Shown piece after piece: positions 3,339 to 60,199 of a DNA stretch of 64,000 nucleotides (position 1 is its first letter; every line of letters starts with the position of its first letter). This DNA is from Anthoceros angustus. Its lineage: Eukaryota; Plantae; Anthocerotophyta. Under the pieces are notes generated by a model. That model was given only the letters and a program-made list of their open reading frames with translations. It did not search any database and had not been told where the DNA came from. The stretch is from NCBI GenBank assembly GCA_010909165.1, contig VJWM01000107.1, positions 434,001 through 498,000 on the forward strand. Direction: 5' to 3'. The position numbers and the translations under genes were made by a program.

Positions 3339-3838
3339 CTTGCAATCAGATATGATTTGACCGAGATTGCACATGTTGTGATAAAGAAAAGAATTGGAAT
3401 AAACTATATTGGACTGTCAATCCTATGTTGCAACAACTTCTTCTTTGTAACAAATTTCAAAATCTGAAGCAAGTTGATCTTTCTCAAGTTATTGAAATAA
3501 TTTACAAGTGTATTATAAGATACTTTTAGCAGTCAAGATAGTGATCGAAGATAAGATAGTGCTTTAAGGGTGCATATTCACGCTGGATTTTAGGTTATTG
3601 AATAATATAGTTTTTAGTGCACGCTCTTCACACTTGTGGTTGAGTATTTGGTGTAGTTTTTATTAGATATCAATATTTTATAATGTGTCTTTGTAGCTTC
3701 TGATTTTCTCTAGTATTAATACTTGATAGTTTCATAGAAATAACTTCATGAACTCTTCACATAGTTGCCATTGCTATTTGTGTGTTATATTGGCTTGCAT
3801 AACCTCATGAAGAAAGTTCTAACTTTTTAATGATAAAT

Positions 3839-4288
3839 TCACTCTTCAAGTGGCCCGTTGAATGAAAATCTTAAATAACAATCAATTGCACTATATTCAG
3901 CTTCACTTGCTCGGGGACAAAGTTGGTCGAGGATGTTTTTCAAAGTTTGAAGACATACTAGACAATTTGCACTATCATCTATTCTGCATGCATTTACATT
4001 GTTATAACAATTGACACTCCCCCAAAAAAAGGCAGGCAAAGGAGGTGGATAGTTCTCATAATAATATGGCATTCCTGTAGGGTAGTTGCTAAATGCTTTG
4101 TGTATCATGCCAGCCAATTCGGTATCTTTTATTGCCATTCTTGGATCGCCAACTGCAAAGTCTGGACCGCAATAGTGGTGAAGTTCCTCAGTATTTGGTG
4201 TAACTATAATCACTGCTTCTGATAATGAGGATAAAAATATAACCAAAATTAATATATAACTAAGTTGGGATGTTTTAGGCAATGCCAT
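3839..4288 (-). CDS. Secreted single-domain DUF26/Gnk2-like (ginkbilobin-2/salt-stress antifungal) cysteine-rich protein
   Basis: Hydrophobic signal peptide. The segment FWGSVNC...CLVCLQTLKNILDQLCP..AEYSAIDCYLRFS resembles the Gnk2 C-terminal pattern. Intronless 149-aa ORF. Confidence 0.75.
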   Translation of the reverse strand: MALPKTSQLSYILILVIFLSSLSEAVIIVTPNTEELHHYCGPDFAVGDPRMAIKDTELAGMIHKAFSNYPTGMPYYYENYPPPLPAFFWGSVNCYNNVNACRIDDSANCLVCLQTLKNILDQLCPRASEAEYSAIDCYLRFSFNGPLEE

Positions 4289-5049
4289 ATTTTATAAACA
4301 CTTATTCATAGAAATCATGAATCTCTTCGATATACATATGTATACTCTTCTTGGACATCTCCACCAGTTCAACAAACTTATTTATTTATCATATATCACA
4401 CAAGAAAGCCGGAACCGATTAGAGCTAGCCCCGTTCTTAGGCCTTTACCCGGTCCTTAAATAATGTGCCTATTCTCTCAACTTAGGATTACAAGTAGCCT
4501 GTTTTTAATTATTTTTACTTGGATGAAATTTTGCATCGGAAAAGAAAGCATGGACATGCTTGTGTCACGGCTATGGCGGTTTGTGGGATTGGGGATGGCA
4601 GCCGAGGCAGCAGCAGTAAGGTTGTGCGAAGTGTCACCCCTCCGACCCAAGATGGTTCCCGATGTTGGTCGCTGGCCGGGGAAACGCGGATTACGGGGCC
4701 GAAGATGCCCACTCGGTGACGGAATGGCTGGCGAACGTTCGGGGAAAAGAGGAAATAGATGAGCGCCAAATGCCTTCAGTATGGCCGATGTCGCAAGCAG
4801 CTCTTTCATAGGTGTCCGTTTCTGCTCTGCTGTGCCAGGGGAGTGACGCATTGCTAGGCCCGGCAACTGCAGAATGACGGTAGCTATGCGGATGTGCAAC
4901 TGGAAAGCAGGTGCGTGGTGGCAACGGAACCGGCACCCGCGCTGTGTGGTACCTTCCACTTGCTGATGAGGGGCGTAGTCCCCTCCGCAAGGTTCTGTTC
5001 TGCCGCAAGCCTGATATCCCTCTGGAGGCGGTGGAACGTGAACGACACG

Positions 5050-6190
5050 ATGCAATACTTCATACAGGCAACTTGTCATATGATCTCATGTTCCTTATCT
5101 CCGCTTGAGCAGGCACGGGAAGCTGTTCCCTCACAAACTCGGCAGTGAGGCTGTCCCTTGGCACTACCAACCTGTAGATCAAATAGAAAGGTTTCCTGAG
5201 CATTGTCTGATCCAAGGACTGTCTAAGACAGACGAAAGAAATAATACACAAACACCCAGTTCATCATCGCCAGTGCAAGTGCATTTTACCTACAATTGGC
5301 ATCTGCCATCATGTGCCGCTCCCAAGGAAGGTAGATAACAGTTCCACTGGTTACAAAAGTTTCTGGAAATGTAACAGTTTCCACTGCACCCAAGAGCAAC
5401 ATTGACACGGCCTAAGACAACAAAAATCGACAGCAAAAGTTATAGAACTCACGTTTTGCAGTTCGTATGAAAGCAAAGCCTTGCGCGTCTCATGCCTTTG
5501 TTGGCTTGCCAAAAGCCAAGCCAGAGCCAACGGGAAGGCGTCTCTAACTGCAATGAGGACTTCATCTGAGTTCTTGTCCATCCAATCCACAACTATGCGC
5601 CACTTACCAGATACCACACAGAACAACTGCTTTCAGGGAGAAAACATCTCAAGGACAGAACAAGACAAAAAAAGCAGCTCCCCTGTTCTTGACCTGAAAT
5701 GATCCTGTTGGGTAATACCTGCTGCAAAGTGAGTGAGAACAGCCCTGCTCGCAAGTCACCTATCAGGTGCAGAACATCTTGGTAGATAAAGCCTCCGCTG
5801 GGCATCTTCTTGCATGGCCGGAGAGTGCTGAAGCCACAGTGAACATAAAATTTTCCCATACCAACCAATGGGAGGGCCTCAATCTCCAGTACCACTCCTT
5901 GCGAACCAGCCAGTGCCTGCAAACAAGGTTGAAGGCAAGCTGAAAATAAGGCTATAATACAAATGAACATCACTAAAATAATTCCCTGGCAAGATTCTTT
6001 TAATGTCCTCTCTTTGCCACGCCCAACTGCCACTGCCACTGCATCTGCATATTGCACTTGAGTCACTACCGTCTTCTACATATCCCCATTGTGCAGCTTT
6101 CATGTGTCCTTGTGGCATTGCGTTTCCATCCCAATGCCTAAAGCCTGACAAACTCCCCGCCAAGGACAGTGATGCGGAGTGGTAACAGAC
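5050..6190 (-). pseudogene. Truncated copy of the LpxB-related (TIGR03492-like) gene
   Basis: Remnants LPLVGMG..PSGGFIY, IAV.DAFPLALAW and LVVPRDSLTAEF. The SNGHGED exon segment and the equivalents of exons 6-9 are deleted relative to 11328-13813. Confidence 0.85.
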
Positions 6191-6325
6191 GATGGACTGC
6201 ATCGATCATCATCATCCAGCTGATGCAAGCTACTAGCAGCTCTCATTGGGCCGACAGTCATCCAACTTGGTGTACGTTGCTTTATCACTTCTCATTCTGG
6301 TACCTTTATCACTCAAGATTGAACC
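6191..6325 (-). pseudogene. Duplicated 3' end of the SWSAP1-like gene, partly inverted
   Basis: 6256-6325 is collinear with about 13888-13960. 6191-6247 is the reverse complement of about 13826-13878. Confidence 0.75.
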
Positions 6326-7268: not shown

Positions 7269-7373
7269 AGCAAGGCCCACAAGGATGAAGCCGGATAGAG
7301 CAACGACTGGCAGGGCAGCAACAATCGAGAAAGCAAGAGCCTACAAAGGCTCTGCCATTTGTGCGCGACAACG

Positions 7374-8540
7374 ATGGCGCAAGCGATAGCAGGGATTCGA
7401 AGGCGACAGGCACTGGCCATCACTTGGCTGCTGCTGCAGCTATTTGTCACACTCACCTCCGCCTGCACCTCGGGCGACCGGGCCGCATTGCTGGCCTTCA
7501 AGGCGGGCACCAACCGGGAGAAGGACTTCACCGGCATCCTCGACTCGTGGGTGGAAGGCGGCAACTGCTGCAAATTCTACGGCGTGGGCTGCAACTCGCA
7601 GGGCCGGGTGGTGAGTCTCACCATCGTGGTCCCCCCGATCGGGTCCGAGTGCGACGGCGAGGACGTGCTGTGCCCCAACCTGCAGCGCGCGGACGGCGTG
7701 ACCAACCTGGTGGGCACCACCCTCGCCAAGCTCCCCGCGCTGGAGGTGCTCCACCTCGGGAACGTGGACTTCCTGGAGGACGCCACGCCCACCGGCCTGA
7801 GCAAGCTCAAGAAGCTCAGAATCCTGCGCCTGGAGGACGGCAGGCTCGCGGGCCCGGTGGCCGATGACTTCGGCAGGATCACATCCCTCACATCCCTCAG
7901 CCTCCGGGGGAACCCCTCCATCGTCGGCCCGCTGCCCGCCTCCCTTTGCCAGCTCGCCCACCTGGAGACCCTCGATCTGTCCGGGTACCCCACTTTCTTC
8001 GGCTTCCTCAACGGCTCCCTCCCGGCCTGCATCGGCCACCTCCGCCACCTGCAGCACCTCCGTGTGCCGTACAACCACCTCACCGGCCGGCTGCCCGCCT
8101 CGCTCTCCGGACTCCGCAAGCTGAAGGAGCTGAATGTGAGCGGGAACGAGTTCCGCGGTCCCCTGCCCGTGCTGCCCATTCCCAGCCTGCGGGTGCTCAA
8201 CCTGGACGGGAACAATTTTGTGGGCACCATTCCGCCGCTCTACGGCAGCCTCACCTCCCTGGTGGACTTGCGGCTGGGAGGATTGAACGTGCCTGGCGAG
8301 GTGACGGGCCTGACCAGCCAGCTGCGGGGCCAGATTCCCAAGCAATTGGGTAACCTGAAGAAGATCCAGGTGCTCCGCATCCGGGCCACCAAAATCCACG
8401 GCGTCATCCCACCGTCCTTCAGCAGCCTCTTTAATCTGGTGGACCTGGAGCTGGATCACAACCGGCTCACGGCCCCCGTCCCCGACTTCACCAAGCTCCC
8501 CAATCTCGACACGCTCGACCTTCTAGGCAATCTGTTTTGA
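7374..8540 (+). CDS. Secreted leucine-rich repeat protein (PGIP-like, LRRNT plus about 10 LRRs, no TM or kinase domain)
   Basis: Signal peptide, CTSGDRAALLAFK...W...CC.FYGVGC LRRNT cap and repeated LxxLxLxxNxLxGxIP units. Intronless and GC-rich. Confidence 0.92.
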   Translation: MAQAIAGIRRRQALAITWLLLQLFVTLTSACTSGDRAALLAFKAGTNREKDFTGILDSWVEGGNCCKFYGVGCNSQGRVVSLTIVVPPIGSECDGEDVLCPNLQRADGVTNLVGTTLAKLPALEVLHLGNVDFLEDATPTGLSKLKKLRILRLEDGRLAGPVADDFGRITSLTSLSLRGNPSIVGPLPASLCQLAHLETLDLSGYPTFFGFLNGSLPACIGHLRHLQHLRVPYNHLTGRLPASLSGLRKLKELNVSGNEFRGPLPVLPIPSLRVLNLDGNNFVGTIPPLYGSLTSLVDLRLGGLNVPGEVTGLTSQLRGQIPKQLGNLKKIQVLRIRATKIHGVIPPSFSSLFNLVDLELDHNRLTAPVPDFTKLPNLDTLDLLGNLF

Positions 8541-8988: not shown

Positions 8989-10009
8989 ACATCCGCATTA
9001 GGTGGATCTACAAGTACTAGGACGTGCTTGGTCACTTTCACAAATTGGAGAATGAGATTGTCAATTATGTGGAAGCTCTCCAGGAGGTCCATGTTCCCTC
9101 TATTCAAACTACCAAGGTCTATGATAACATCCCACATCCTGTAGTTCCCTCCTACATATAGAGGAGAGTATTAAAGACCTTGCATGATACAACAAGAAAA
9201 CAAACAACCAAGGTGAGAGAGATGTGGAATTATAATGTTACATATGAGATCTAAATAGCTGAAATGTCCAATAGCACCTATGTCATATGACATGTCAACA
9301 CAAGTAATATGATCCTATTTAGTATATGGTCAGATGCAGTATTGGATAAATCATGAATAAGCTGATATGTGTTTTTTTATAATTGACGAATATATTTTTT
9401 ATTTTTTATCAATATCTACTATCATTTTGTACCTAAATATCAATAGTATATATTTAAATATATATGTACAAAGTCAACAAGCATGAATAAAATATCTTAA
9501 GATTCCAAAAGACCTGAACACGAACATGAGCTTCATGATGATGAAATGAATTTTCGATAATAGTCACTTGGTTGGGTTTACTGTCACTTCTTGAAACCTA
9601 ATTGTAATATTCCTCGGTCACCTCAACAATATGTAGGGCCTCCCATCTTCAAAACTATGACATTGTAGGGTGACTTGATACCTAACATACCTCCTTGATC
9701 TCAATTTGACCCTTGGGATCTTCTCTAAGTTCTCATATGGTAGATCGTTTTATTCCATTTTTATGTATAAAAAATATTTCTCTCTATTTTGATATTTTCT
9801 CTAGCACCTTAGAAAACTACATGAAATGCAAGTGGAATATTGCCTTGAACATAAGTCAATCTTATCGACAAGAAACATTGAGATATGTCAACAAAATAGA
9901 ATTAACATAATAGTTTCATAGAACGAACTTCATGAGCTCTTTAGCTATTGATGAGTTATATTGGGCTTGTATAACTCGTGAAGAAAGTTCTACCTTTTTT
10001 GAGATACAT

Positions 10010-10489
10010 TTATTCTTCAAGTGGTCCATTGAATGAAAATCTTAAATAACAATCAACTGCACTGTATTCGGCTTCACTTGCTCGTGGACAAATCTGGTCA
10101 AGACGTATTCTTAAAGTTTCGAGACATTGTTCACAAGCTATACTACTATCCATTGTGCATCCATTCCTATAACAGTTAATACTCCCCCAAAAATAGGTAG
10201 GCAAAGGAGATGGGTAGTTCTCATAATAATATGGCATTTCTTTAGGGAATCTGCTGAATCCTTTGTCTATCAATCCATATAATTCCGTAGCTTTTATCGA
10301 CATTCTTAAATCACCAGCTTCAAAGTCAGGACCACAATAATGACTACGTTCAGTAGTAATAGGTGCAAAGGTAAAACTTGCTTTACTTATTTTTGATAAT
10401 AAAGATAAAAATATAATAAAAGTTAACATATAACTAAATTGAAATATCCTAGACAATATCATATCTACAGAAAGAATAATACATACCAT
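10010..10489 (-). CDS. Secreted single-domain DUF26/Gnk2-like protein (paralog of 3839-4288)
   Basis: Signal peptide, HYCGPDF, FWGSINC...CEQCLETL...ICPRASEAEYSAVDCYLRFSFNGPLEE. Confidence 0.75.
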   Translation of the reverse strand: MVCIILSVDMILSRIFQFSYMLTFIIFLSLLSKISKASFTFAPITTERSHYCGPDFEAGDLRMSIKATELYGLIDKGFSRFPKEMPYYYENYPSPLPTYFWGSINCYRNGCTMDSSIACEQCLETLRIRLDQICPRASEAEYSAVDCYLRFSFNGPLEE

Positions 10490-11327
10490 AATAATTATAA
10501 GTCTCTTACATATATACTCTTCTCCAACATCATCAGTTCACCAAACTTATTTGTTCATCATGCGCCACGAAAGAAAGCCAGAACCGATCCGACCTAGGCT
10601 GATTTATGTCCTTTACCCGGTCCTTGAATGGTGTGCCTGGTAGGTTTATCGACATAGGATTACAAGTAGCCTACTTTTAATTATTTTGACTTGGATGCAT
10701 TTTTCATCGGAAAAGAGAGCACGAACTCGCGCATGCTTGTGTCAGGGCAATGGCGATGTGGAGGGCAATCGATTCCTGATTTGGAAGCGTCAGTAATGTG
10801 CGGGTACAGGAAAGCGGTGACGCCGATGGCGCCAGCAAGAGATCTGGGATGGCAGCTGGTGCAGCAGTGGTGAGCTTCTGCGAAGTATCACCGACCCGAC
10901 ATGGTTCCAGATGTAAGCCGCTGGCCAGGAAGATGCGTATAACAGGGCCGGGGAGGCGGATAGCGAGGACAGGAAGGCCGGCGAGTCTTCGGGATGAAAA
11001 AGGTAGTAGATGAGCAACCAATGTGGCCGGTGTCGGAAGCAGCCTCATTGGTTTCCGTTTCTGCTCTGCTGTGTCAGGGGAGTGACGCATTTGATAGGCC
11101 CGTCAGCTGCAGAATGACGGTCGCTGTGGCGGACGTGCAACTGGAAAGCAGGTGCGTTGGTGGCACCGGCACCGGTACCCGCGCTGCCTGATACATTAAC
11201 TCGACTTCGCCTTGCTGATGCGGGGCGTGGCCCCCTCTGCAAGAATTCTGTTCAACATCAAGCCGGACATTCCTCTGGAGGCGGTGGTAGAGAGCCTCCA
11301 GTCGACCTGAAGCGCCTGACGTCTCTT

Positions 11328-13813
11328 CTATGTCCCCGAGATCAGCTCTATCCAGAGATGCCGAGCTATCCTCCCAGCAGCCCCGCTTGATCCCATGCGT
11401 CGAAAGCCGTTTTCTCGTACCACCTCAAGCTCACTCGCTGCATGCATCATCCTGTGCAACCTGGCGGCGAGTTCTGTTGGATATGAGCACAGTATTATCT
11501 GCATGGCAACAACGCATATCAGAGCTCTGTGCCATCCACAAGCCTGCTGTCCCTCCCTTGCAACACATACCGATTTTCCCAAGAGTCGTGACTGTGCCTC
11601 TGCAAAGGCATAAGAGAACTGAGGGCCTTTGCCAGGGATGGTGAAGACAGGTCTCCCGAGCCCGACCTGCAACAGACAGTCCGCTTTTAAGATTACGATG
11701 TTGAAGGGAGATGAGCACACGAGTGAGGCAACATGTTCTTACCAGTTGCTCCGTGGCAGTTCCAGCCATGGCGATCCCAGCGTCTGACCAATGTGCACAA
11801 TCACTGAAACCTCCTCTCAGCAGAAACACCACAGCATTTCCTTTGGTGTAAGGAAGGATGGAGTCGGTCCTGTTTGCCGGCCAGGTGCGTGACATGCCTT
11901 CGCTGCTTCTTGCCCCTCGCAGCCAACCCCGGTCTGCAAGCGCCTTCACAAACTCTTGAGGTTCAAGAGAGGGCACGATAGGTGCCACAAAGTGGACACG
12001 ACCTGGTGCGAACTTTGTCACCACCGCATCCACTACTTCCAGCAAGACACGCCAGTTCGCATGCACCTGCACAACGTCAGGAGACTCAATATGGTTGACA
12101 TCACATCGTCATCGTTACAGGGAAAGACCTGCAACAGCTGGCTGGAGTATGATGCACAACCTCAGGTTCTCTGGAGCCAGGAAGAAGGGCAAGACGTCGG
12201 GCAGAATTGTCTTGGGAGAGAAAACTGAGAATCCCTGTTGGTTGTAGCCCATCCATCATGGGATTCCCCAAGGCTTGTACCTGCGTTCCACTAGATTAAC
12301 TGGGTGGAACCTGCAAGACAATACCATACTTCATACAGGAGACTTATGACATAATCTCATTTTCTTTACCTTCGCATGAGCAGGCACGGGAAGCTGTTGC
12401 CTCAAAAACTCGGCCGTGAGGCTGTCCCTTGGCACTACCAACCTGTAGATCAAATAACAAGCTTTCCTGAGAATTGTCTGATCCAAAGACAGACGAACGA
12501 AATCCTACACAATATTAATCACCAACTTGCTCATCGCCAGTGCAACGGCATTTTACCTACAATTGGCATCTGCCATCATGTGCCGCTCCCAAGGGAGGTA
12601 GATACTTCCTGGAAATATGACAGTTTCCACTGCACCCACGAGCAACACTGACACGGCCTAAGGCACCAAAAATTGACAACAAAACTTATTTATGACAGTG
12701 ATCACAAAAGTAGAACACACCACCTGTGGGCTTCAGTGCCTCCCCATCCTCGCGTCGTACATAAAACTCACTTTTTGCAGTTCCTATGAAAGCAAAGCCT
12801 TTGCACATCTTATGACTTTTTTGTCTTGACACAAGCCAAGCCAGTGCCAACGGGAAGACATCTCCAACTGCAATAAGGGCTCCATCTGAGTTCTTCTCCA
12901 CCCAATCCACAACTGTGCGCCACTTACCAGATACCACGCAGAACAACTACTTTCAGGAAGAAAACATTAAAAAGACCGAACCAAGACAGTGAAAGGAGCT
13001 CCCCCCTTCTTGACCTGCAATGACTGTCTTGAACAAATGAATGGGTGATACCTGCTGCAAAGTGAGTGAGAACAGCCCTGCTCGCAAGTCACCTATCAGC
13101 TGCAGAACATCCATATAGATAAAGCCTCCGCTAGGCATGTTCTTGGATGGCCCGATAGTGCTGAACCCACCGCGAATGTATGAGCTTCCCAGACCAACCA
13201 ATGGAAGGGCCTCAATCTCCAGTACTGCTCCTTGGGAAGCAGCTAGTGCCTGAAAACAAGGTTGAAGACGAGCTGAAAATAAGGACACAATACAAATGAC
13301 CCTCAGATACATGATTCTTTTACAGGGTCCTTTTCAGAAAGGTGGTTCAGATACATGATTCCTAGGGATTCATACAAATGACCCTCAGATACATGATTCT
13401 TTTACAGGGTCCTTTTCTGAAAGGTGGTTCTTTTACAGGGTCACTACCTGAAGCTCCTCAAGAACCCTCGTAGCAATAACATCTTCACCATGCCCGTTAC
13501 TCAGACACAGCACCTTTTTTAATGCCCTCTCTTTGCCATGCCCAACTGGCACTGCATCTGCATATTGCACTTGCTCAGGGGAGTCACGACCTCCTTCTAC
13601 ATATCCCCATTGTGCAGCTTTCAATTGTCCTTGTGGCATTGCGTTCCCATGCCAATGCTTAAAGCCTGACAAACTCCCCACTAAGGACAATGATGCGGAG
13701 TGATAACAGATCACGTTCGTTGCTGAACAGTGGTACACCAGGCTTGACAACACGGCTTCTTTTCCACAAGCTGCAGATATCCATGGTAAATTCACAACCG
13801 CAGATTCAAGCAT
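11328..13813 (-). CDS. Lipid-A-disaccharide synthase (LpxB)-related protein, cyanobacterial TIGR03492-like family; 9 exons, N-terminal extension of about 100 aa
   Basis: Motifs in order: VLCLSNGHGED, LPLVG.G, PSGGF, AVGDVFPL, GTAKSEFY, IYLPWER, VVPRDSLT, LGNPMMDGL, LLPGSREPE, IAMAGTATEQLVGLGRPVFTIPGKGPQFSYAFAEAQSRLLG, GFRRMGSSGAAGRIA. All introns can be placed at GT..AG with frame preserved, e.g. exon 1 13813-13448, exon 2 13249-13052, last exon ending at TAG 11328. The start could instead be the ATG at 13639. Confidence 0.85.
13290..13430. repeat. Intronic tandem duplication (about 59-bp core, period 82)
   Basis: atacaaatgaccctcagatacatgattcttttacagggtcc repeated at 13290 and 13372. Confidence 0.8.
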
Positions 13814-13848
13814 GGTTGCAACTCAATGAGGGCTGCTAGTAGCTTGGA

Positions 13849-15334
13849 TCAGCTGGATGATGATGATCGATGCAGTCCATCAAACTTCAGAAAGTCATCC
13901 AACTTGGTGTACGTTGCTTCATCAGTGCTCATTTTGATACCTCGATCGCTCAAGATTGAACAAGCAAACTTTGTTCGTCCCAAGGCTGAAACAGAGCAAC
14001 CACCTTTCAGTCAACTGCTCCTGCCCCACAAAACATTCAAATACTGATTTGAGCTCCTACACAAAAAAACTCACGCTTGACATTGCACTGGACGGAAAGC
14101 CATCTTCGAAGTAGATACAAATACCGTGTCCCACCAGCATGACTGTCTGAAACTACGAGGTGGCATTTCTTGGTTGGAGGCAACTTCTGACTGCACAGGC
14201 AAGATGTGGACCATCAAGCATAACGAAAAATCTGCGTATGCCAACAAGATAGAACAGCACTTGCAGTAGTGATCAACACCCTCTGTATACCAAGCACTGG
14301 CCGCAAAGTACCTGGCCACCTCACAACGCGGTTATGTCCGGGAAATAGAGAGAAATGGCAACTAAATCTACTCCAAACCGAGTATCTTACTTGGCATGAT
14401 CGATTGCATTACAGCACAGAGCTAAAATTTTAACCACCGCTGTCTCCTGGACTTTCTTTTGGTCGTACTTCCTGCAGACAGGTGTTCCATGTAAGGAACA
14501 GACTTGACAAACTTCAATCTAAACACCGATGCAACACCAACTTCACCCGTACTCATACACCTTTCCAGGACGAGGTCACAGAAATTGTCGATGATTACTG
14601 CCTGGGGCAGAGTGCTCTGCAGGTGAAATGCTGCGAAATACTTGCATAGCTCATCCTCGTCATCCACATATCTGCAAGTGAAGAACATTTTTCGATTTAA
14701 GCCACCACATACATTTTCAACATCAGAAGAGGCATAAACATCCAATCCTATCTTGGAGTGACTGATCACTTACTTGAAATGGATCCTCTCAAAAACATTA
14801 GACGTCGGGTCTACTCCCTGCAGCCGAGAAGTGTGTCTGATTGTCTCAATAACCTTAAGTTGGTGACTGGCCTAGTACTTCTATACTCATCGACTGATCA
14901 TGGAATGGAGCCCAAGAAATTGTAAAATTAAAGGGCAACATAACTGTGAAATTGAACCATGCAGCATGAATCACCCTCCACGTGTTTCAACACCAACATG
15001 ATACCTGGGAGACAACTGGCGGGTCAGACTCCAACTGCTTCCGATTGCAGATGAAAATCACAGTAGATGTCTTCTCCAAAGCAGTGTTGTAAGCAAACTG
15101 CAAAAGAAGGGACGTCTTGCCACTGCAATCGCATCCCATCCCCATCCAACACGCAACATTTCGTAAGCACAGCTCCTACGGCCGCAGAGAACTTAAAAGG
15201 CCATGTATGGACCGGCAGTACCAGCTAGCAGGTCCGGAAAGCAGTATCCGCTGGGGCACTTTCACCACTAAACCACCCCCTGCCGATCTCTGTTCAGAAG
15301 GAACAAAGAAGAAGCTCTCCAGGCAGATTGGCAT
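13849..15334 (-). CDS. SWSAP1: SWSAP1-like RecA-fold ATPase (Shu-complex component), multi-exon
   Basis: Spliced ILLSGPAS-GKTSLLLQFAYN (Walker A), FICNRKQLESDPP, ERIHFKYVDDEDELCKYFAAFHL..PQAVIIDNF, ILALCCNAIDHA, LYLLRRWL. The last exon and stop position are less certain. Confidence 0.65.
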
Positions 15335-22417: not shown

Positions 22418-22669
22418 TCCAACTCTAGTCATTCCGTTCACATCTATCAAAGTTTCTGAGCTACATGTCCAAGTTCTTTTAGAGCCATTTTTTTTTTAAT
22501 TCATGCTTGAATCTTCTGTCAGGTCTACTCATGAGGTGAGCCATCCCCTCCCCCTGTACCTGGGTGCTTGTTCAATCCTCAATTTTTTGCCGCTTGATTG
22601 AACGGAGGATGGTCTTCTGTCACAGTCATGACTGACAGCTGTATTCCGTCAATAGGAGGTTCATATTCT

Positions 22670-24770
22670 ATGCATCGTGTTGGGCTCCGGGCCCTGTGTC
22701 TTGTGGTCAGCATAGTTCTGACATGGCCCAGTGTCTGGGGCCTTTCCACTCAATTTTCGTTTTCTTCATTCCATGATGGGTCGCCTGACATAATATGCCT
22801 TGGGAATGCAACGATTGTGAATGGGGTAGTAGAGCTAACAGACCAGGGTAGGGCCGCACTTAGCACTGGCCGGGCTTTGTACAGCAAATCGGTGCAGTTG
22901 CTCGACCCCGCTTCAAATCAGACAGCTTCCTTCAGTACAGTCTTTACCTTTGCCATGTTGTTCCCACCCAATGCTACTATATTCCGGGAAGGTTTGGCCC
23001 TTGTCTTTGTTCCCGACAATGACAGTTTGGGGGACTCGGGAGCTCAGCTAGGAGTGTACGATAGTTCCGATGTGGTCTCATCCAGCCACACACTTGCTGT
23101 GATATTCGACACTTACACCACAGCTGGTGTGGACGACAACCATGTTGGCGTGACTGTGACCAACATCTCTTCCTTGTTCTCCATAGACTTGGGTGATGCT
23201 TCTATCAGCTTCCGCAATGGCTCTGTTATTACGGCATGGCTTGACTACGATGGCAGCAACAGTCACTTAGAGATTCGGTTGGGATATGATGCAGCTGAGA
23301 GGCCCACCAATGCGATCCTTTCCTGCATCCTTGAACTCTCGAGTGTGTTCAATCCTTTCATGTTTGTAGGATTTTCGGCCTCCGACATCAACTCAGGTGC
23401 TCGCCACATTATATCTTCCTGGAACTTCACAAGCTCGGGCATACAAGCAGCTCCCTCGTCTTCCCCTGGTATCATACGAACGAGCTTTGTGGCCGGATTT
23501 TCCATCTTGGTGGTTGTTTCCGTGTTGGCTTGTATTTCAGTCTTCTGGCTGCGGCAAAAGCAGAAGGCGATTTCCCTCTTCAGAAGAGCAGAGCTATACG
23601 AGCGAGAAGTGTTATACGGTCCTCGAAAATTCAGCTATAAGGAGTTGAGCAAAGCAACGATGGCGTTCAGTGACAAGGAAAAGGTTGGGTACGGCGGAAT
23701 GGGCAATGTGTACCGAGGGGTACTCCCAGACTGTGGCTATCTGGTTGCAGTGAAACGAATCCGGGAGGTCTGTAACATGGGACAGAGGGAAGTGCTAGCC
23801 CAGGTGGATTATCTGGGTCAAGTGCGGCATCGAAATCTGGTTCAGTTGCAAGGATGGTGTTACGATAAAGGAGAGCTCCTGCTAGTGTACGAGTTCATGC
23901 CGAATGGCAGCCTAGATAAGGTTCTGTTCGATCGCAAAGGGGACGTCTTGACCTGGATCCACCGCTTCAAGATCGTGTCAGGAGTGGCTGCAGGTTTGGA
24001 ACACCTGCACGAGGAGGTAACTAAAAGCCCATGAAAGGGAAAAGGTTTGAGCTTCCACAATCTATTTTCCAGTGAGCAGTGGCCTAAGTTTGCCTCTTTG
24101 TTGGATGACACAGATGGTGGTGCATCGTGATATCAAAGCCAGTAACGTGATGTTGGACAACACTTTCACGTCCAGACTGGGTGACTTCGGCATTGCCCAA
24201 GTAATACGGTACTACAATAACAGGCAGAACACCGTTGTTGCTGGCACGTTCGGATATCTGGCACCAGAGATCATTCAGACCGGAAAGGCCTCCGACAAGA
24301 CCGATGTGTTCAGCTTTGGGGCACTGACTCTGGAGGTGGCTTGTGGGCGTCGCGTTCTGGAAATGTCAGCACCAGCAGACAAATCAGTCCTGATAGACTG
24401 GGTGTGGGGAATGCATCTCAAAGGCTCCGTTCTGGAAGCAGCTGATCCTCGACTCAAGGGCACCTACGATGTTCAAGAAATGACCATTCTGCTGCACCTG
24501 GGCCTGTTGTGCACTCAGTCCAACCCCTCCCGCCGGCCATCCATGAAACTAGTAGGGGAGATTTTATCCGGCCAGGCACCTCTCCCCACAGTTCCAACCT
24601 TCAAGGCAGAGGCAGGCGACGTCCCCGTCTCTGGAGAGACCATCGCAGACCTCATTCGTGAAGGCCCCGCAACTGGCTACAGTCCTGACGTGGTTTTGAA
24701 CATGTCTCCCTCAGGACGCGGCCCCTGCGGAGACAAGACTGTGGAGGTCTTCGAAAACGTTCTCATCTGA
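22670..24770 (+). CDS. L-type lectin receptor-like kinase (LecRK); one intron at 24017-24113
   Basis: Signal peptide, legume-lectin domain (GRALY, GLALVF, DNHVG, WLDYDG), TM helix, kinase with VAVK, HRDIKASN, DFG and GYLAPE. Confidence 0.9.
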
Positions 24771-25275: not shown

Positions 25276-27626
25276 TCAGTCCTCCAGGGGAAGAGTGTGG
25301 CCGGAGAAGGAACTGGACAAGGAAGCGGACTGCGAGAAGTCGAGCTGGGCGATGATGTCCTGCATGGTGACGGGCGGGTGCAGCATTGCAGAGTACTGTG
25401 GCGTGGGCTTGGAGCTGGGCAGCGCCGGCAGCGACGCGTCCCCGGCCAGCACCTGCAGCACCTGCCGCATGGATGGCCTTTGCACGGGATCAGGGTGCGA
25501 GCAGGCCAGCCCGACCTGCAACAGCGTCGTCATCTCCACAGGATCGAAGCTCCCCTGCAGCCTCAAGTCCGCGGCCTCCAGCAACCTCCCCTGCTTGTTG
25601 AGCGCCCAAACCCAATCCACCAGCACCACCTCCGCCACAGGATACTCCCTCTCCACAGGCCGCCTCCCGCACGCCACCTCCAGCGCCACAGCCCCGAAGC
25701 TGAACACATCCGTCTTGTCCGTGGCCTTCCCGGTGTGCGTCGACTCGGGGGCCAGGTACCCGAACGTCCCCACAATCACCGTCGTCTCGGGCTGCCGGGA
25801 GTGCTCGCTCGCCCGCGCCAGCCCGAAATCCCCCAGCCTCGCATTGAACCCCCCGTCCAGCATCACATTGCTGGCCTTCACGTCCCGGTGCACCACGCGC
25901 TGATCCCACCCCTCGTGGAGGTACGCCAGCGCCGCCGCCACGCCACTCACGATCCGGTACCTCCTCTCCCAGCTCAACACGAAGCTGCCGCCGCAAGAAG
26001 GCCCGGGCCCTGCTGCCCCGCTGCCCCTGCCACCGGCGGCGGGCGCTTGCTCTCCCGCCGCCGCCACGTCCAGAGCAGGCCCTCCCTGGCGGCGCCGCCG
26101 GCGGAGGAGGAGCCCCCGGAGTCGCTGCTGGAGTGGCCCCGCGCGTTGGAGCCCAGGTCGGAGAAGAGCAGCTTGTCCAGGCTCCCGTTGGGCATGTAGT
26201 CGTAGACGAGCAGGAGCTGGCCCTTGGCGCTGCACCAGCCGCGGAGGGGCACCAGGTTGCGGTGCCGGAGCCGGGAGATGATGGAGAGCTCGGCGGTGAA
26301 CTCCCGCCTTCCCGTCCGGTTTGCCGCGGAAATCCGCTTCACTGCCACCACGGTCCCGCAGTCCGGGAGCACGCCCATGTACACCGTCCCGGATCCCCCC
26401 GATCCCAGAAGCTTCCTCGCGCTGAAGTTCTTGGTGGCCAGGCTCAGCTCCTTGAGGCTGAACTTCCGCGGCCCGTTCACCATCTCCGAGTCCGAATTCT
26501 GCCCAGCGGCAGCCCCCGCCTCCTTCGCCCTCCGCCGGAACAAGAGCAGGAAGCAGATTCCCAAAGCCGTCGCCAGCACTGCTCCGAGCGAGGACGAGAA
26601 GGCCACCACGAACGGCTTCCTGCAGAGGAAGGATCCGCAGCCTGAGCTGCTCCTTCCCGATCCTCCGATCCCAGGCCCGGGGGCGGAAGCTGGGGAGATG
26701 GATATGCTGTCGGGAGGGATTTGGTGCCCTGGAGGAAGGGTGGCTGTGAGAGGGGATTGTGCTGGGACCGGGAGTGGGCCTGGGGCGGGGTAATCCGGGA
26801 GGCCGGAGGAGGAGAAGGTCCAGGAGAAGATGGTGTGGATTTCGATCAGGCCTCCGGTTGCGGCCGCGAATCCCACATACATGAACTCGTTGAGGAAGAG
26901 GGAGAGGTCGAGCGGGAGGGAGAGGATCGGGGAGGATGGCTTCACGGGGGGGACGGAGTTGTTGATGCTCACTTGGAGGCTCTTGGCGTTGCCGTCGTAG
27001 TCCACCCACACCTTGATGTTGTTCCCGTTGAGGAGCCCCATCCCGATGGCCGACATGTTGGCTGTGGCGATGGAGCGCATGTCGTTGAGGTCGATCCCGA
27101 CGTGGTTCCCGTCCGGGTCGAAGATGGGACCCCCGTTCTGGAACGTGTCCAGCTCCACCGCCAGCGTCCTGCTCCCGGGCTGCCCGTCCGAGGTGGAGTT
27201 GAGCACGCCCAGCCAGCCCCCGTAGCTCCCGAGCGTGCTGTTATCGGGCACCAGCACGAACGCCAGCCCGTCCCCGTGCACCTCGCTGGTGTTGGTGATC
27301 CGGAACTCGAAGCTGGTGTGGAAGGAGGCCACCCGGCCCGACGCCCGGTCGAACACCCGCACCGGGTCCCTGTACAGCGCCCGCCCCACCGAGCTCTCCA
27401 GCTGCCGGATCACCGAGTCCTGCGTCAGCTCCAGGTTCTTGTCCCCGTTGATGAACGCGTCCCCGAGCAGCACCAGGTCCGCGGACGAGAACTCCGACGC
27501 CCCAATTCCGAAGCTCACATTCTGCCCCTCTCCCTTCCCCACCCACAACCAGAGCAGCAGCATCCACACAACCCACAAACCCCATCCCCATCCCTCCTGC
27601 ACGGCCCCTGCATTCCCCGCCCCCAT
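25276..27626 (-). CDS. L-type lectin receptor-like kinase with a low-complexity kinase insert and an apparent frameshift near 25990-26160 (possible pseudogene or assembly error)
   Basis: ORF 25974-27626 gives signal peptide, lectin domain, TM and kinase N-lobe. The C-lobe ([25 protein letters not shown]) is in a different frame (ORF 25276-27009). Confidence 0.85.
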
Positions 27627-43812: not shown

Positions 43813-45575
43813 ATGGCAGCAATGCAGGGAGCAGGATCAGGCGCGCAGATGCAACCCTACGGCCAGGCGCCGTCACCGGTGTACAACAGAGTGGCAACGC
43901 CACCAACTGGAGCGGCAGGCCAAGGCATGGCAGCCCCCAGCAAGAAGAGGGGGCGGCCAACACCTGCAGCGGCTGTGGCGTCCACTGCAGCAGTGACTAA
44001 CAACGCCTACAAGGCTCAGGAGCTGGCTCCAGCTGCCCGCAGGAAGAAGCGCAAGGTGCAGGAAAAGCAGCTGCCAGAACGCATAGCAGCGCTGCTGCCG
44101 GAGTCCGCTATCTACACGCAGCTGCTGGAGTTCGAGGCTCGGGTGGACGCTGCTCTCACCCGCAAGAAGCTGGACATTCAGGAGGCTGTGAGGTAAAGGC
44201 TTGTCCGGTTGGAGCTACCCTTGTGCTATGTGCTCTGAAGCGTCTTTTGGCTTGGCAGTTCCAACTTGGCTGTGCTGCATGATTGATATGTTGGTGGTGG
44301 GTTGTTTGTGCGTGGAGTCTACATAGAAACCCGCCTCGAATGCAACGCACTCTTAGGATGTATATTTTCAATACCTACCACAACCAAGTGAATGATCACG
44401 CACAGAATTTGCCAGGGGGTAGACCGCAGGATGGACCGTCTTGGAATCTTAGAATTATGGGACGGCTTCTGGACGAAGCTGGGTTAGATTCTCAGACGGC
44501 TGCAAACCTGCCAAAGTTCTCTTCCTTTTTCAAGAAGATCTCAGTCAACTTGGATCCACTCTTGTACCCGGACAATCACACCATTATCTGGGATGGAGCA
44601 CGGACCAACAACTCTGTGGAGGGTTTTGAGATCAAGAGGAAGGGGGACAAGGAGTTCAATGTTAAGATTAAGCTAGAGCTCAGTTATAGTCCCGAAAGGT
44701 TCAAACTGTCGCAGAGTCTTGCTGAGCTTCTCGGGGTGGAGGTGGACACCAGGCCCAGGATCATAGCTGCACTATGGCAGTACATCAAGGGCAAAAAACT
44801 CCAGAATCCCTCTGACCCAACGGTCATCAACTGTGATCCACCATTGCGCAAGATTCTTGAGGACGATTCCATCAAGTTTGCTTATGTTGCCCAGAAACTG
44901 CATCCGCATCTTTCAACACCTCAACCCATTCAGCTTGAGCATCGCATCAAAGTCAGTGGCAGGAACCCTGCAGGTAACAAGTTTGTCCTGATCTTTGTAT
45001 CCTCAGGGGGAGGTAGTGTGTCCCTGCAGTTTTGGTTGGGCATAGATTTAGGTCATTGGCTATGTTGTGGCGCTCTTACTGACAGCCCGTTTTTCTTCTT
45101 TAGGGCAATCTTGCTACGATGTTTCAGTGGATGTTCCGGCTCCTCTGCAAAAGGAGATGAACAACTTTCTTGCAAACATTGAAAAGCACAGGGACATTGA
45201 CAACTACGACGACATCATCTGTGCCTCAATAAGGAAAATCAATGAGCACAGGAAGCGGAGAGCTTTCTTTCTTGGTTTCAGCAACTCCCCTGTGGATTTT
45301 ATCAACGGTTTAATTGCATCCCAAAGTAGAGATCTGAAAATGGTCAGTGGTCAACCAAACCGAAATGCCGAAAAGGAGCGTCGGTCGGACTTCTACAATC
45401 AGCCCTGGTATGTATCAGCTCCAGACTTTCACGCCTGCCTTGCCATATTTAACTCTCTGCTTTGAGATGGACCACTCACAATATTTCCTGTTTGTGTTGC
45501 AGGGTGGAAGATGCTGTCATTCGCTACCTAAATCGACGGCCAGTGAAGGGTGCCGATGGTCTTGGAAACTCTTGA
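43813..45575 (+). CDS. SWP73: SWI/SNF complex subunit SNF12/BAF60 (SWP73/CHC1 homolog); exons 43813-44192, 44327-44973, 45104-45407, 45503-45575
   Basis: LLPESAIYTQLLEFEARVDAAL.RKK, LRMYIFNT, SWIB domain (LWQYIK.KKLQNPSDP..INCD) and FYNQPWVEDAVIRYL. Confidence 0.95.
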
Positions 45576-52264: not shown

Positions 52265-55200
52265 TCAGTACTTGATTGACTTGAACATACAAGATCGCCT
52301 GTCATCTACTGCGGAGCTTAGATGCAAGGAGGAAGGCATTTCAGAATATTTCCTTGCACTAAGCTCTGTTTCTATCAATAAAATCAGCTGCTTGTGGCCA
52401 CATTGCTTCCTTAACAGAACCTTTCGGAAGGCTGTCCAGCCCAACCATTCCATCTCCTGCAGAGGGAATGAAAAGCATGGCAGGAAACTGGAGATGCGGC
52501 CCATGGCATGCATGCGCTGCTTCACGAGTCGATGCATGTACCTACAGAATTGACAGTTGGACCTCATGTAAGTTTCATACTATATCGTCGGAAAACATAT
52601 ACAACAACAGCATGCAAGAAAGGAAATGACCTGATTGTTGTCCAAATAGCCTTGAACAAGAATGTAGGATTGCAAGCACCAACTCGAGGCATTGCACGCA
52701 CATAGGCGTGAAACTTCATTGCACACAGCAGGAACGCTTGATATGCATTCAACCTCACTGTAGCCGGTGAGTTGATGTTCAAATCGTAGAACAGCGGATG
52801 ACATTTTGGTCTCATAAACTGACACAGTTTGATCACTAGATGGTTTCCTTGATTGTTCTCCACCACTACTGTCAATGAAGATGCAATGTGCTCTCCACAA
52901 TATCTGTCAAAACATCCGCTGGTTTATCACCACTGGAACAGGACGACCTAGAAACCTTGTAGAAATTTGAAATCCAGCTCCACAACCATACGGACAGCAA
53001 CCAGCAACACCACGACACCTCATGCATACCTGGTATAATCAGCTTGGATTTCAAGCGTGTAACAGTTGACAAGTAGTCCACACCATCGCATGAAACGTGC
53101 TCCATCTTCAGTCTGATAGACATCCATAGGAATGAACTGCTCATTGCAATACATGTCAAAGCTCACCGCAGTTTTCCTCTTGTTTGCATGGCATCCATAC
53201 TCCTCAAATCCATTGTGCATTTTATCCACATACAAGGAAACCTGCGCTTGAGAGGTAGAGATGAACAGAGAATCATCAATAAGCCGAAGTAACAAAAAAT
53301 TGGCTGCATTTGTAGCCACAGCAGGCACAAAATCTGGTCCAGTATTTGCCACATCTGTCAACATCACCTTGCTCTGACAAATGTTTCTACCTCCACCACA
53401 GCCAGACTCCACCAAAGCAGAGTCAGCACCTTTCTCTAAAGAACACTTGACCAGATTGTCTAGAGAGGGCGCCATCAAGGAACTTTCCCTTTCACCCTCA
53501 GAGGGAAATGGGTGCTCTGTAACATGCCCATTGCAATTTGGCTCCAAAAACTTCTGGAGACAGGGTAGAAGACAATGTCGGTCCAGATGGCCATAAAATA
53601 GGCAACAAAGTAGAGACGACACCACACTCCCTTGTGGGATTCCCACTGTCTGCACATAAAATTTAGATCCAACCTGTAAGATATTTTTTCTCACGTGATC
53701 ATCCAGCATGGCAAGGATCCTTTCTCGGCATAAAGTAGCAAAGAAAACCTGCCACAAAACACGTGAACTTCCTCAACATCTTCAAGTTTATCTGGAAAAG
53801 TCAGAAAACAAAGAAGGAAACAGGCCTACCTGGTCTGCATAAATACTATTTTGAGATTTGCTCGTCAAAGATGAAGCGAAATCAATGAAGTTCTGATGCT
53901 CTCCCCAGGTAGTGCAAGCCCTTTCATGGCAGACTCTCACACCACCAACTGTTGGAACAACCGAAACGTAACGGCGCACCGTATACTGTTTTTGTTGTAA
54001 AAACTTGCTCACTATGTCACATAGCTTTGGCTGCTGGATTGTATCAAAAGCTTTTGCAACATCACATATCCCAAAAAATAAACGCGGCAGCCCATGTCCC
54101 GAGCTTTTCAGTTGCATAACAAAAGGGACGAGCTTCATGTAGGTGTCATTGTAGCCAAAGACAGAACATCCTAGATCCTCAGCATGCGACACCTGCTCAG
54201 ATTTTAGACAGCTGTGAACATCTCGAAGGACTGTATTGACAGGCTTGAAAACGAGTTGGAATTTTCTCCCCAGATGCCGGGAAAGATTCTGTCCACTCCT
54301 GGAGCCATTAGTTTCTCTCTCATGAATGGGTTGTCCTACCTGGCCGAATACCTCCTTGAAGGTAAGGGGCTCTTTTTGAATATCAGACCTGACTGTACAG
54401 CGCGATGGAGCTCCAAGGTTTAATATTGGCCTCACCCCGTTCTCTTTGGGTAGAAACCTGATTTTTGAAAACCCAAGGATCTTTTTCTTCAGTGTGGAAG
54501 CCAGACAGCTGGGACTGACCACCTTGAAGCTGGTGTCAACAAGGTCCTTCAAAGCTGTAGACTTTATCCTCGCCCACACTGGCTTCCGATAATAGAATAC
54601 ATCTCTTCTATGGTTCTCATTCTCTGTGACGTAGAAGTGTGCACGAAGGAGAGGTCCCACAAAGCGAGTAAAATACCAAGAGCACCATAGTTCTACGGTC
54701 CTCCTTGTTGGTGCCTTCAGGAAAGGCTTCTGTGTACCGTGTTGAACACCTTCATGCCAGCCAAACCCTTGCATTCCAAGCCTGAAGAAGAAGTGTGTTA
54801 AAGAGAACTTTTCATGTCTTCGAAGAGAGATGAACCTGGCAAGGCTTCTCCGGAGAGCTCTCCTACTCTTATTGCAGCCAAGCAGTTGTGCAGGAATAAC
54901 TCTTCGAGACACAGCCCAGATGAAGGCTACCACCTGTGTGTGAGAGCAAAAGCTTGCGATGAGCTCCTCCTGAGAAAGTTGACAGTTCTTTTGCTCTCCA
55001 GAGTCTTCATTATTCGCGTTAACCTCCCCACCGACCATAGTCTCCAACAGGGGAGAGCCACAGGTTGAAGTGCTGACAGGTCTACTTGTGCTGTCTTGAT
55101 GTAGTCCACCTGTTACTTTGTCACATGCCATTTGCTGGGCACCTGTCACCTCTTCCTCCCTTAGATCAGAGTCTTCAATGTCTGTGCTTACAGCACTTGT

Positions 55201-58546: not shown

Positions 58547-60199
58547 TGTCTGAACTGATCACTCTACTGCGACGCTCACCTCCAGACTCATCTCAGCTCA
58601 TCGCTCATCGGCTTTTACGCGCGGGGGAGTGGCTACACTAGTCACCAGTCGGTGTTGCACCATGTCTTCCTCCAACGGAAAGGCCTGTGACATCCATACG
58701 ACAGTTACGGTTCCTGGGCTTATTTCAGTTATGACCAGTTTTTCAATTTTCTATTTTTAGATTCTCCGTGAAGAACATCGTAGTTAAGCGACTCCGGCAC
58801 TACGTTCAGATGGGGTGCTTGGCATTTAAACTCTACACGTTTTCTTCCAATCCTCCCCACAAATGAAGAATAATTGCATAGGCAGTATAAATTTGAGAAA
58901 GAAAACCATACGGTACAGGATTAAGAATGATGCTTAATATTGAAAGAAGGTTTCACCCTTTGAGTCTCGCTAAGGAGACCAGCACATCCAAGCGTGCTGT
59001 TGCTATATCAATCTCATATGCTAGTCCAACCTATGGATTTTATGTCCATAGTCTCTTTGCTTATTGATAATGTTGTGGCATTCCTATTGCGTGAGCTAGT
59101 AATTTTCTTGGGTTATTGATGTGTATCCATTTCTCAAGTTGTGTAACCCCGAGAAAAGACCGAATCTCACATTACATATCATGAAGTTAGAAATTGTCTT
59201 TCAGAGACTTTATCCTGGACATGTCCCATGCAGGTCCACTACTGAGAAAAAGCAGACCAAAATAACTTTTCAAAAACAAGCAACAAGTCTAGTCATCACG
59301 GTAATTAATACGATTAAAATGTTACAAAATCTAACATGGATGTATATATCACTGAAAATAATATAGTATATTTGTCACCGATGGTGAATTGAAAGAGTCT
59401 TATCCTCTATACGTCACAAAACGAGCAAGTAAGTGGCATTCACACCCATCTATTGAAATTGGAACACCAAAAGAAACAATACAAGTTCCTCCATATCATG
59501 TAAATTTTTAAAATTTGGACCACTTCTTGATTTGTGCGTGCCATCTCCATGAATCTTCTTTGTATTGTTTCAATTTTATTAGATATCCTTAAAATCGATA
59601 AGAGCTCTTTGGTTTTTTTAGGAGTTAAGGATGGCATAAAGATAGCTGCAATGTTCACAACAGTCTCATACAATGTAGCCTTGTAATATAGCCTAACATT
59701 ACCACTGGAAGGATTTGTGACATGTATTTGCTTGATCCTTCGAGTATATGTACCTATGCGGAAGATTATACTTTAATAGAGACCCGCTGCTCCAACCATT
59801 CGCTCTCGTTTTCATATCGGTAAACATATAATGTTAATAATTCAGCAACACCGCCTACAAAGTGTTACAAAGGGAATCAAAGACTCTTAGAAAGTAGCAA
59901 CACGCATCTAGGCAACATGTGACACAAAAGCATCCAGATTCACAAGCTCGCAGCAAACCAGGACTGCCAGCATTATATGACTGCTTTTTGCAATAATTTA
60001 AGATAATTAAAAAGAATAATTGACACTATAAGGGCATCGGAAACGTGGGAGCCACATGTGACAAATGGGGAGATTGATTCGTGGTCTCCTCTTGAACATA
60101 ATATAGTAGGGAGCCGGCGGCTTATTTATGTGCACAAGTTTCGACACTTTCCACAATTGAAAACAACGGCAGCCGTCCGTAGGCAGGGTCGGCTACTCT

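Follow-up and report, generated by a model that had tools for sequence, protein, structure and literature searches.

The DNA analysed here is a 64,000-nucleotide (nt) stretch of the genome of the hornwort Anthoceros angustus, hereafter the window (contig VJWM01000107.1, positions 434,001 to 498,000, assembly GCA_010909165.1), and its subject is a gene of the protein family TIGR03492 that occupies 13813-11328 of the minus strand. Nine open stretches separated by eight introns, all eight of them GT..AG and between 72 and 198 nt long, join in one frame with no internal stop. The frame opens with an ATG at 13813, upstream of which lies an in-frame stop, and closes with TAG at 11330-11328. The coding sequence measures 1644 nt and encodes 547 amino acids (aa) if exon 3 begins at acceptor 12946, or 539 aa if it begins at 12922. 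The coordinates are exactly those of an earlier reading of the letters alone (the sequence-only reading), in which nine exons spliced in frame, and the model confirms an intact, intron-containing plant nuclear gene.

Exon 1 (13813-13448, minus strand like all the others; 122 codons) encodes an N-terminal extension followed by LCLSNGHGED and ends in a CAG/GT donor; its last 21 residues match positions 1-21 of the TIGR03492 profile, and its intron position is common to Marchantia, Ceratodon, and Klebsormidium. Exon 2 (13249-13052, 66 codons) carries LPLVG and MPSGGFIYMD and scores 65.9 bits over profile positions 27-83, with both flanking introns conserved in position and phase. Exon 3 (12946-12724), with AVGD and GTAKSEFY, scores 35.8 bits (profile 80-133); its alternative in-frame acceptor at 12922 yields eight residues fewer. 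The homologs, which have no counterpart of these eight residues, and a hidden Markov model (HMM) of the bacterial family members (484 versus 471 bits) both prefer 12922, whereas 12946 has the better pyrimidine tract. Exon 4 (12629-12557, running from phase 1 to phase 2) encodes YLPWER and exon 5 (12442-12370) encodes VVPRDSLT. At 73 nt each they are too short for a score of their own, and their boundaries agree with introns annotated independently in other species, those of exon 4 matching Marchantia and Ceratodon. Exon 6 (12280-12161, 40 codons) contributes GNPMMDGL and LLPGSREPE (33 bits, profile 183-218), and exon 7 (12066-11743, 108 codons) contributes a variable insert and AMAGTATEQL (60.1 bits, profile 220-311). 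Exon 8 (11666-11571, 32 codons), running from VGLG to GPQFSYAFAEAQSRLLG, scores 53.2 bits over profile positions 312-343, and the introns on either side of it recur in Marchantia, Ceratodon, and Klebsormidium. Exon 9 (11498-11328), with 56 codons and the stop TAG at 11330-11328, scores 27.5 bits (profile 346-393). Most of intron 1 is filled by a direct repeat of 75 nt (13290-13364 and 13372-13446) whose copies are 89% identical and spaced by 82 nt.

The spliced product contains all nine motif blocks that the sequence-only reading had listed for the family: SNGHGED, PSGGF, GTAKS, YLPWER, PRDSLT, GNPMMDGL, LLPGSREPE, AMAGTATEQLVGLG, which straddles the exon 7/8 junction, and GPQFSYAFAEAQSRLLG. 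SNGHGED occupies residues 105-111, so that approximately 100 residues precede the first block, as that reading had noted. The assignment to a TIGR03492-like family, for which a HMMER search had been suggested as a check, was examined by scoring the exon pieces against NCBIfam TIGR03492 and by scoring the whole spliced protein locally against the HMM of bacterial members only. Seven exon translations match TIGR03492 in collinear order with E values from 1e-4 to 3e-18, and their scores sum to approximately 297 bits, relative to a curated cutoff of 219.2. The bacteria-only HMM matches the spliced protein in one domain with 471-484 bits (E from approximately 1e-145 to 1e-149), the match of 484 bits spanning positions 18-434 of 447. 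In a 64-sequence alignment, the protein keeps all 57 invariant family columns and 62 of the 66 near-invariant ones, and the four differences are conservative. All 15 streptophyte orthologs likewise match TIGR03492 and no other NCBIfam model (Cryptomeria, 375.4 bits). The match of the gene to this family is far beyond chance.

The sequence-only reading had also set the protein apart from canonical plant LpxB, the lipid-A disaccharide synthase, an enzyme that joins UDP-2,3-diacylglucosamine to lipid X, and judged by profile scores it is distinct. In a Pfam scan of the exon pieces, none matched PF02684 at E <= 1. Ten of the 15 orthologs match this model weakly, with a best E of 3e-5; the Cryptomeria protein reaches 14.5 bits, under the gathering score of 22.6. 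The LpxB models of NCBIfam were not matched at E <= 0.01 by any of the 15. In a sequence search of the PDB, LpxB was the sole family with similarity (E 0.18-0.83). Alignment to E. coli LpxB with hhalign covered 79 columns at 26% probability, on the GNPMMD...LLPGSRxPE segment, and exon 6 is the sole stretch with detectable sequence similarity to that enzyme. The AlphaFold model of the Ceratodon ortholog, which is 52.5% identical to the window protein, has a predicted local distance difference test score (pLDDT) of 83.8 and a predicted template modelling score of 0.82, is confident from residue 62 onward, and consists of two Rossmann-like halves. In a Foldseek comparison of this model with the PDB, the top 50 matches listed, of at least 500 at E <= 0.001, are all GT-B proteins (E approximately 1e-11 to 1e-9), including UDP-GlcNAc 2-epimerases, GtfD, CalG, PglA, YojK, and UGT51.

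Relatives were collected first with a phmmer query of exon 7 against 1.84 billion representatives and then with three word searches. The phmmer search gave 42 matches; exon 7 is the least conserved part of the protein, and this search therefore has little bearing on absence in other eukaryotes. Because the word filter scores the 8000 best candidates only, the absence of a lineage is suggestive. More than 2500 relatives were found, nearly all of them cyanobacterial and named "TIGR03492 family" or "lipid-A-disaccharide synthase-related protein," which agrees with the statement in the sequence-only reading that the family is essentially cyanobacterial. A scan of bacterial genomes, one per species, found a relative in at least 549, and the best 80 loci of that scan are nearly all titled cyanobacteria, the rare exceptions appearing to be binning errors. 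Two such loci, L036 and L038 (L numbers are our locus handles), from metagenome-assembled genomes labelled Actinomycetota and Candidatus Gracilibacteria, are typical cyanobacterial copies that fall inside cyanobacterial clades in the tree and are probably such errors.

The eukaryotic members are all streptophytes. At least 12 species have orthologs in public protein sets, where they are listed as uncharacterised proteins: the streptophyte algae Mesostigma, Chlorokybus, Klebsormidium, and Chara; the liverworts Marchantia, two Riccia species, and Calypogeia; the mosses Ceratodon, Physcomitrium, and two Sphagnum species; and the conifer Cryptomeria japonica, with which two intron-free Logan contigs group. 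A streptophyte-only profile separates streptophytes (at least 615 bits) from all other sequences (at most 519). The relatives found by the word searches included none from angiosperms, ferns, lycophytes, chlorophytes, red algae, or glaucophytes. Placing the Chara protein (842 aa) first in the query alignment returned no further eukaryote, and bacterial proteins were still included. The sequence-only reading had considered retention in seed-free plants; that restriction is wrong, because a conifer, C. japonica, has an ortholog. The window protein, whose own sequence is absent from the collection searched, shows 40-52.5% identity with the named streptophyte orthologs and 42-46% with cyanobacterial proteins. 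Full-length, intron-free ortholog products occur on Logan contigs of 1.9-2.5 kb. The genomic loci are longer, at 3.4-5.3 kb, and contain 6-10 introns; the difference indicates that the orthologs in other species are transcribed and spliced. Three further loci from JGI metagenomes (L085, L086, and L087; 3300057185, 3300056990, and 3300056988; 2.7-3.2 kb, 41-42% GC) are labelled "TIGR03492 family" and are really plant genomic fragments. They are approximately 70% identical to window residues 410-495, but their introns are laid out differently: one uninterrupted stretch encodes residues 410-495 or 410-545, and the two 3′ introns conserved from Klebsormidium to land plants seem absent.

A maximum likelihood tree of 53 rows (LG+C20), built without an outgroup and without early-branching cyanobacteria, places all eukaryotic copies in a single clade with support of 100/100. 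The closest relatives of this clade are cyanobacterial, and its internal order roughly mirrors the streptophyte species tree. Within a clade of embryophytes (97/91), the liverworts, the mosses, and the conifer group each emerge as a unit. A weakly supported node (80/37) places the window protein as sister to the liverworts and mosses together, which is where a hornwort would fall. The Nostocales form a clade of their own (100/100), with the eukaryotes outside. In the approximately unbiased (AU) test, a placement of eukaryotes as sister to Nostocales was not rejected (p = 0.35), the cyanobacterial backbone being unresolved. Independent evidence came from intron positions mapped with the public annotation, in which the Marchantia gene has 9 introns, that of Ceratodon 10, and that of Klebsormidium 6. 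All eight window introns match Marchantia and Ceratodon in alignment position and phase, and six of the eight match Klebsormidium; the Marchantia gene has one intron more than the window gene, and the Ceratodon gene two more. The shared positions imply that an intron-bearing nuclear gene existed before Klebsormidium and land plants split. Together with the single eukaryotic clade, they argue for one ancient cyanobacterial-derived acquisition rather than a recent transfer from Nostoc, in line with the old acquisition that the sequence-only reading had envisaged. In the phylogeny it had recommended, the gene groups with streptophyte algal homologs, and nesting inside Nostocales was not seen. For the origin there are two candidate scenarios, an endosymbiotic transfer followed by losses in other Archaeplastida and a horizontal transfer into the stem lineage of the streptophytes.

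The gene has a decayed tandem duplicate, a pseudogene located at 5021-6324 of the same (minus) strand, approximately 5 kb downstream. It belongs to a duplicated block whose main copy spans 10003-13961 and whose second copy spans 3832-6324 (minus strand), the two being 74-87% identical at the nucleotide level. The duplicate lacks the ATG region, where a 58-nt inverted piece lies at 6191-6248, as well as the SNGHGED segment and exons 6-9; it contains in-frame stops and altered invariant residues. An exon-2-like open reading frame (ORF) at 5593-6066 still scores 57.9 bits against TIGR03492. Loss of constraint in the duplicate contrasts, within the same genome, with the intact main copy, and this contrast supports selection maintaining the latter. 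It is near certain that the main copy is an intact nuclear gene of a land plant, that it belongs to the TIGR03492 family with every invariant residue in place, that it encodes a two-domain enzyme of the GT-B type distantly related to LpxB, and that it descends by vertical inheritance from one nuclear entry before the streptophytes diversified. Much of the repeat-bearing stretch of intron 1 (13306-13516 in the main copy) is missing from the duplicate. Just downstream of the gene, both copies of the block carry a small ORF, at 10010-10489 (minus strand, 159 aa) and 3842-4291 (minus strand, 150 aa), with scores of 19.7 and 21.4 bits against Pfam Stress-antifung (DUF26/Gnk2-like), just under the cutoff of 25.

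Other features of the window identify it as land-plant nuclear DNA. A leucine-rich repeat (LRR) ORF lies at 7359-8540 (GC content at third codon positions, GC3, 0.88), and two convergent ORFs for L-type lectin receptor kinases (Lectin_legB plus kinase) lie at 22598-24034 (plus strand) and 25974-27626 (minus strand). A SWIB/MDM2-domain ORF is located at 44283-45182 (plus strand), an ORF with a telomerase RNA-binding domain (a TERT exon) at 53788-55503 (minus strand), and a U6 spliceosomal RNA gene at 59509-59599 (minus strand; 45.8 bits, just over the gathering score). The LRR, receptor kinase, TERT, SWIB, and U6 features around the gene all support this identification. One of the two lectin receptor kinase ORFs has a GC3 of 0.55 and the other of 0.88.

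The N-terminal extension of approximately 100 aa (13813-13514, minus strand) matches no part of the family and is a putative organellar presequence. Serine and threonine make up 22% of the first 50 aa of the window protein, and aspartate and glutamate 4%. All 14 eukaryotic orthologs examined have extra N-terminal residues (48-326); across 212 bacterial proteins the median number is 2. The extension is unconserved and acid-poor, and its Ceratodon equivalent has a pLDDT below 50, with residues 1-61 disordered in the AlphaFold model. These features suggest that the extension, taken as the first 50-140 residues of the eukaryotic copies, is an organellar, most likely plastid, presequence.

Among the cyanobacteria, the surroundings of the gene offer a weak hint of function. 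A gene for an Omp85/POTRA protein lies directly upstream and divergent in 17 of the 66 cyanobacterial loci with enough flank, in at least five orders (Nostocales, Oscillatoriales, Leptolyngbyales, Coleofasciculales, and Nodosilineales). The gap between the two genes is mostly 59-650 nt, and in L081 the two ORFs as called share 58 nt (other loci with the pairing include L009, L013, L019, L039, L044, and L056). No conserved operon was found in 80 cyanobacterial loci, the divergent Omp85 gene being the sole recurrent neighbor. This pairing weakly points to envelope or outer-membrane biogenesis.

From these elements, we propose how the protein could act. The mature enzyme would reside at the plastid envelope membrane, where its N-terminal domain (SNGHGED, PSGGF, and VGD blocks) would hold a lipid-anchored acceptor at the membrane surface, as in LpxB, and its C-terminal domain (GSRxPE and GTATEQ blocks) would bind a nucleotide-activated sugar. 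The sugar would then be moved from the donor to the lipid-anchored acceptor, as LpxB-type GT-B enzymes do, and the plant enzyme would in this way continue, inside plastids, a cyanobacterial envelope or outer-membrane glycolipid step. Considered by itself, a plastid-envelope glycolipid role appears possible and falls somewhat short of an even chance. The explanation as a whole, a functional streptophyte TIGR03492 ortholog with a plastid presequence that transfers glycosyl groups to a lipid at the envelope, is one that we favor with modest confidence. It is a more speculative and rather doubtful step to suppose that TIGR03492 enzymes generally make an undescribed cyanobacterial envelope or outer-membrane glycolipid, or a lipid-linked glycan, that is still made in the plastids of streptophyte algae, bryophytes, and some conifers. 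If true, this would constitute a second "bacterial envelope relic" pathway of plastids beside peptidoglycan.

These readings were weighed against four others. That the protein is the plant canonical lipid-A disaccharide synthase (LpxB, GT19) of the mitochondrial lipid-A-like pathway known from Arabidopsis might be supposed from the automatic UniRef names of some orthologs, e.g., "Lipid-A-disaccharide synthase," from the weak PF02684 matches, and from LpxB being alone matched by sequence in the PDB. We consider it very unlikely, given that the exon pieces fail to match PF02684, that the Cryptomeria protein stays under the gathering score, that the 15 orthologs match TIGR03492 alone within NCBIfam, and that the hhalign alignment is short and of low probability. 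Angiosperms, moreover, have canonical LpxB, and our searches saw no angiosperm ortholog of the window gene. A gene acquired lately by horizontal transfer from a cyanobacterium of the Nostoc type, symbiotic or associated, or bacterial sequence contaminating the assembly, would account for the high identity to cyanobacterial proteins, and the AU test leaves a sister relationship to Nostocales standing. Either is barely credible for a gene with eight spliceosomal introns, all of them present in liverwort and moss orthologs and six in Klebsormidium, that sits among plant genes; its GC3 of 0.50 lies inside the wide range (0.45-0.88) of five neighboring ORFs, and the one eukaryotic clade tracks streptophyte phylogeny and is excluded from the Nostocales crown.

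The neighboring duplicate, which is clearly dead, raises the question of whether the window copy might itself have lost its function, being unexpressed or on the way to becoming a unitary pseudogene. This is highly improbable, as the nine-exon frame is intact, the splice sites are canonical, and every one of the 57 invariant residues is in place; the deletions, stops, and lost motifs of the duplicate 5 kb away illustrate the effect of relaxed constraint. More can be said for an enzyme of the plastid peptidoglycan or cell-wall remnant pathway, or one that decorates it, since the ortholog model has a GT-B fold and MurG has one as well. Neither mur, pbp, nor ddl genes recur near the gene in the 80 cyanobacterial loci, and an amidase/glucosaminidase gene approximately 6 kb away in one Nostoc locus is not a conserved arrangement. 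The distribution of the gene resembles the patchy one described for the plastid peptidoglycan toolkit, which covers streptophyte algae, bryophytes, and some gymnosperms (PMC10784329; PMC12681378); plastid peptidoglycan genes are kept in a Cupressaceae conifer, and the set is mostly incomplete in angiosperms (PMC10784329). This likeness is a correlation only, and glaucophytes and prasinophytes, which keep peptidoglycan genes, are not among the relatives found. We therefore regard a place in the peptidoglycan pathway as unlikely.

Several observations weigh against the proposed envelope glycosyltransferase of ancient cyanobacterial descent. Similarity to LpxB lies beneath family thresholds, and LpxB is absent from the top 50 Foldseek matches of the Ceratodon model; that structure, moreover, was predicted for an ortholog and serves as a proxy for the window protein. 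Basic residues make up only 2% of the first 50 aa, which is atypical for some transit peptides. The cyanobacterial neighborhood is mostly unconserved, with the Omp85 pairing missing in approximately three-quarters of loci. An endosymbiotic origin would need several losses, given the apparent absence of the gene from chlorophytes, red algae, and glaucophytes. Finally, the exon 3 acceptor is ambiguous, 12946 and 12922 both being in frame.

In the library of papers searched, for plants and cyanobacteria alike, neither the family nor its accession nor any of the plant locus names turned up. The window gene adds a lineage to a known but unstudied family and is not a new kind of gene. With its more than 2500 relatives and at least 549 bacterial species genomes, the family ranks among the most widespread cyanobacterial proteins without a function, and the plant copies, with every invariant residue intact, point to an activity worth keeping in the nucleus across streptophyte diversification. 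Because orthologs exist in Marchantia and Physcomitrium, two plants in which genes are knocked out routinely, as well as in model cyanobacteria, the gene is a tractable candidate for a plastid-envelope glycoconjugate. As no flowering-plant copy occurs among the relatives found, it may also serve as a clean marker for cyanobacterial legacies discarded by angiosperms.

The gene has in common with the plastid peptidoglycan set (MurA-G, MraY, PBP, and Ddl) a cyanobacterial descent, a place in the nucleus, a presequence (putative in the window gene), and retention in streptophyte algae, bryophytes, and some conifers. There is no homology between the families, and glaucophytes and some chlorophytes, which also possess the peptidoglycan set, yielded no TIGR03492-like relative in our searches. 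E. coli LpxB (PDB 5W8S/5W8X; PF02684; CAZy GT19) resembles the protein in its GT-B architecture and in the GxxMxD...LLPGSRxxE segment and differs in its equivalog model, sequence similarity being sub-threshold; its N-terminal G-x-G-D/E and C-terminal GTATxE blocks probably also correspond. The pairing of an Omp85-type gene with an lpx-related gene recalls the bamA-lpx cluster of E. coli. Cyanobacterial TIGR03492 proteins, such as those of Halothece PCC 7418 (PCC7418_2721) and Nostoc sp. HK-01 (NIES2109_30710), share the full-length model, the motif blocks, and the invariant residues at 42-46% identity. The plant gene differs from them in its nine exons in the nucleus, in its N-terminal extension of approximately 100 aa, and in a shorter loop between GTAKS and YLPWER. 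The streptophyte orthologs, namely Marchantia MPTK1_6g13300, Physcomitrium LOC112293419, Ceratodon M758_1G116400, Klebsormidium KFL_001520180, and Cryptomeria LOC131029577, are only 40-52.5% identical to the window protein. They belong to one clade with it (100/100), have the same exon-intron plan, carry an N-terminal extension, and match TIGR03492.

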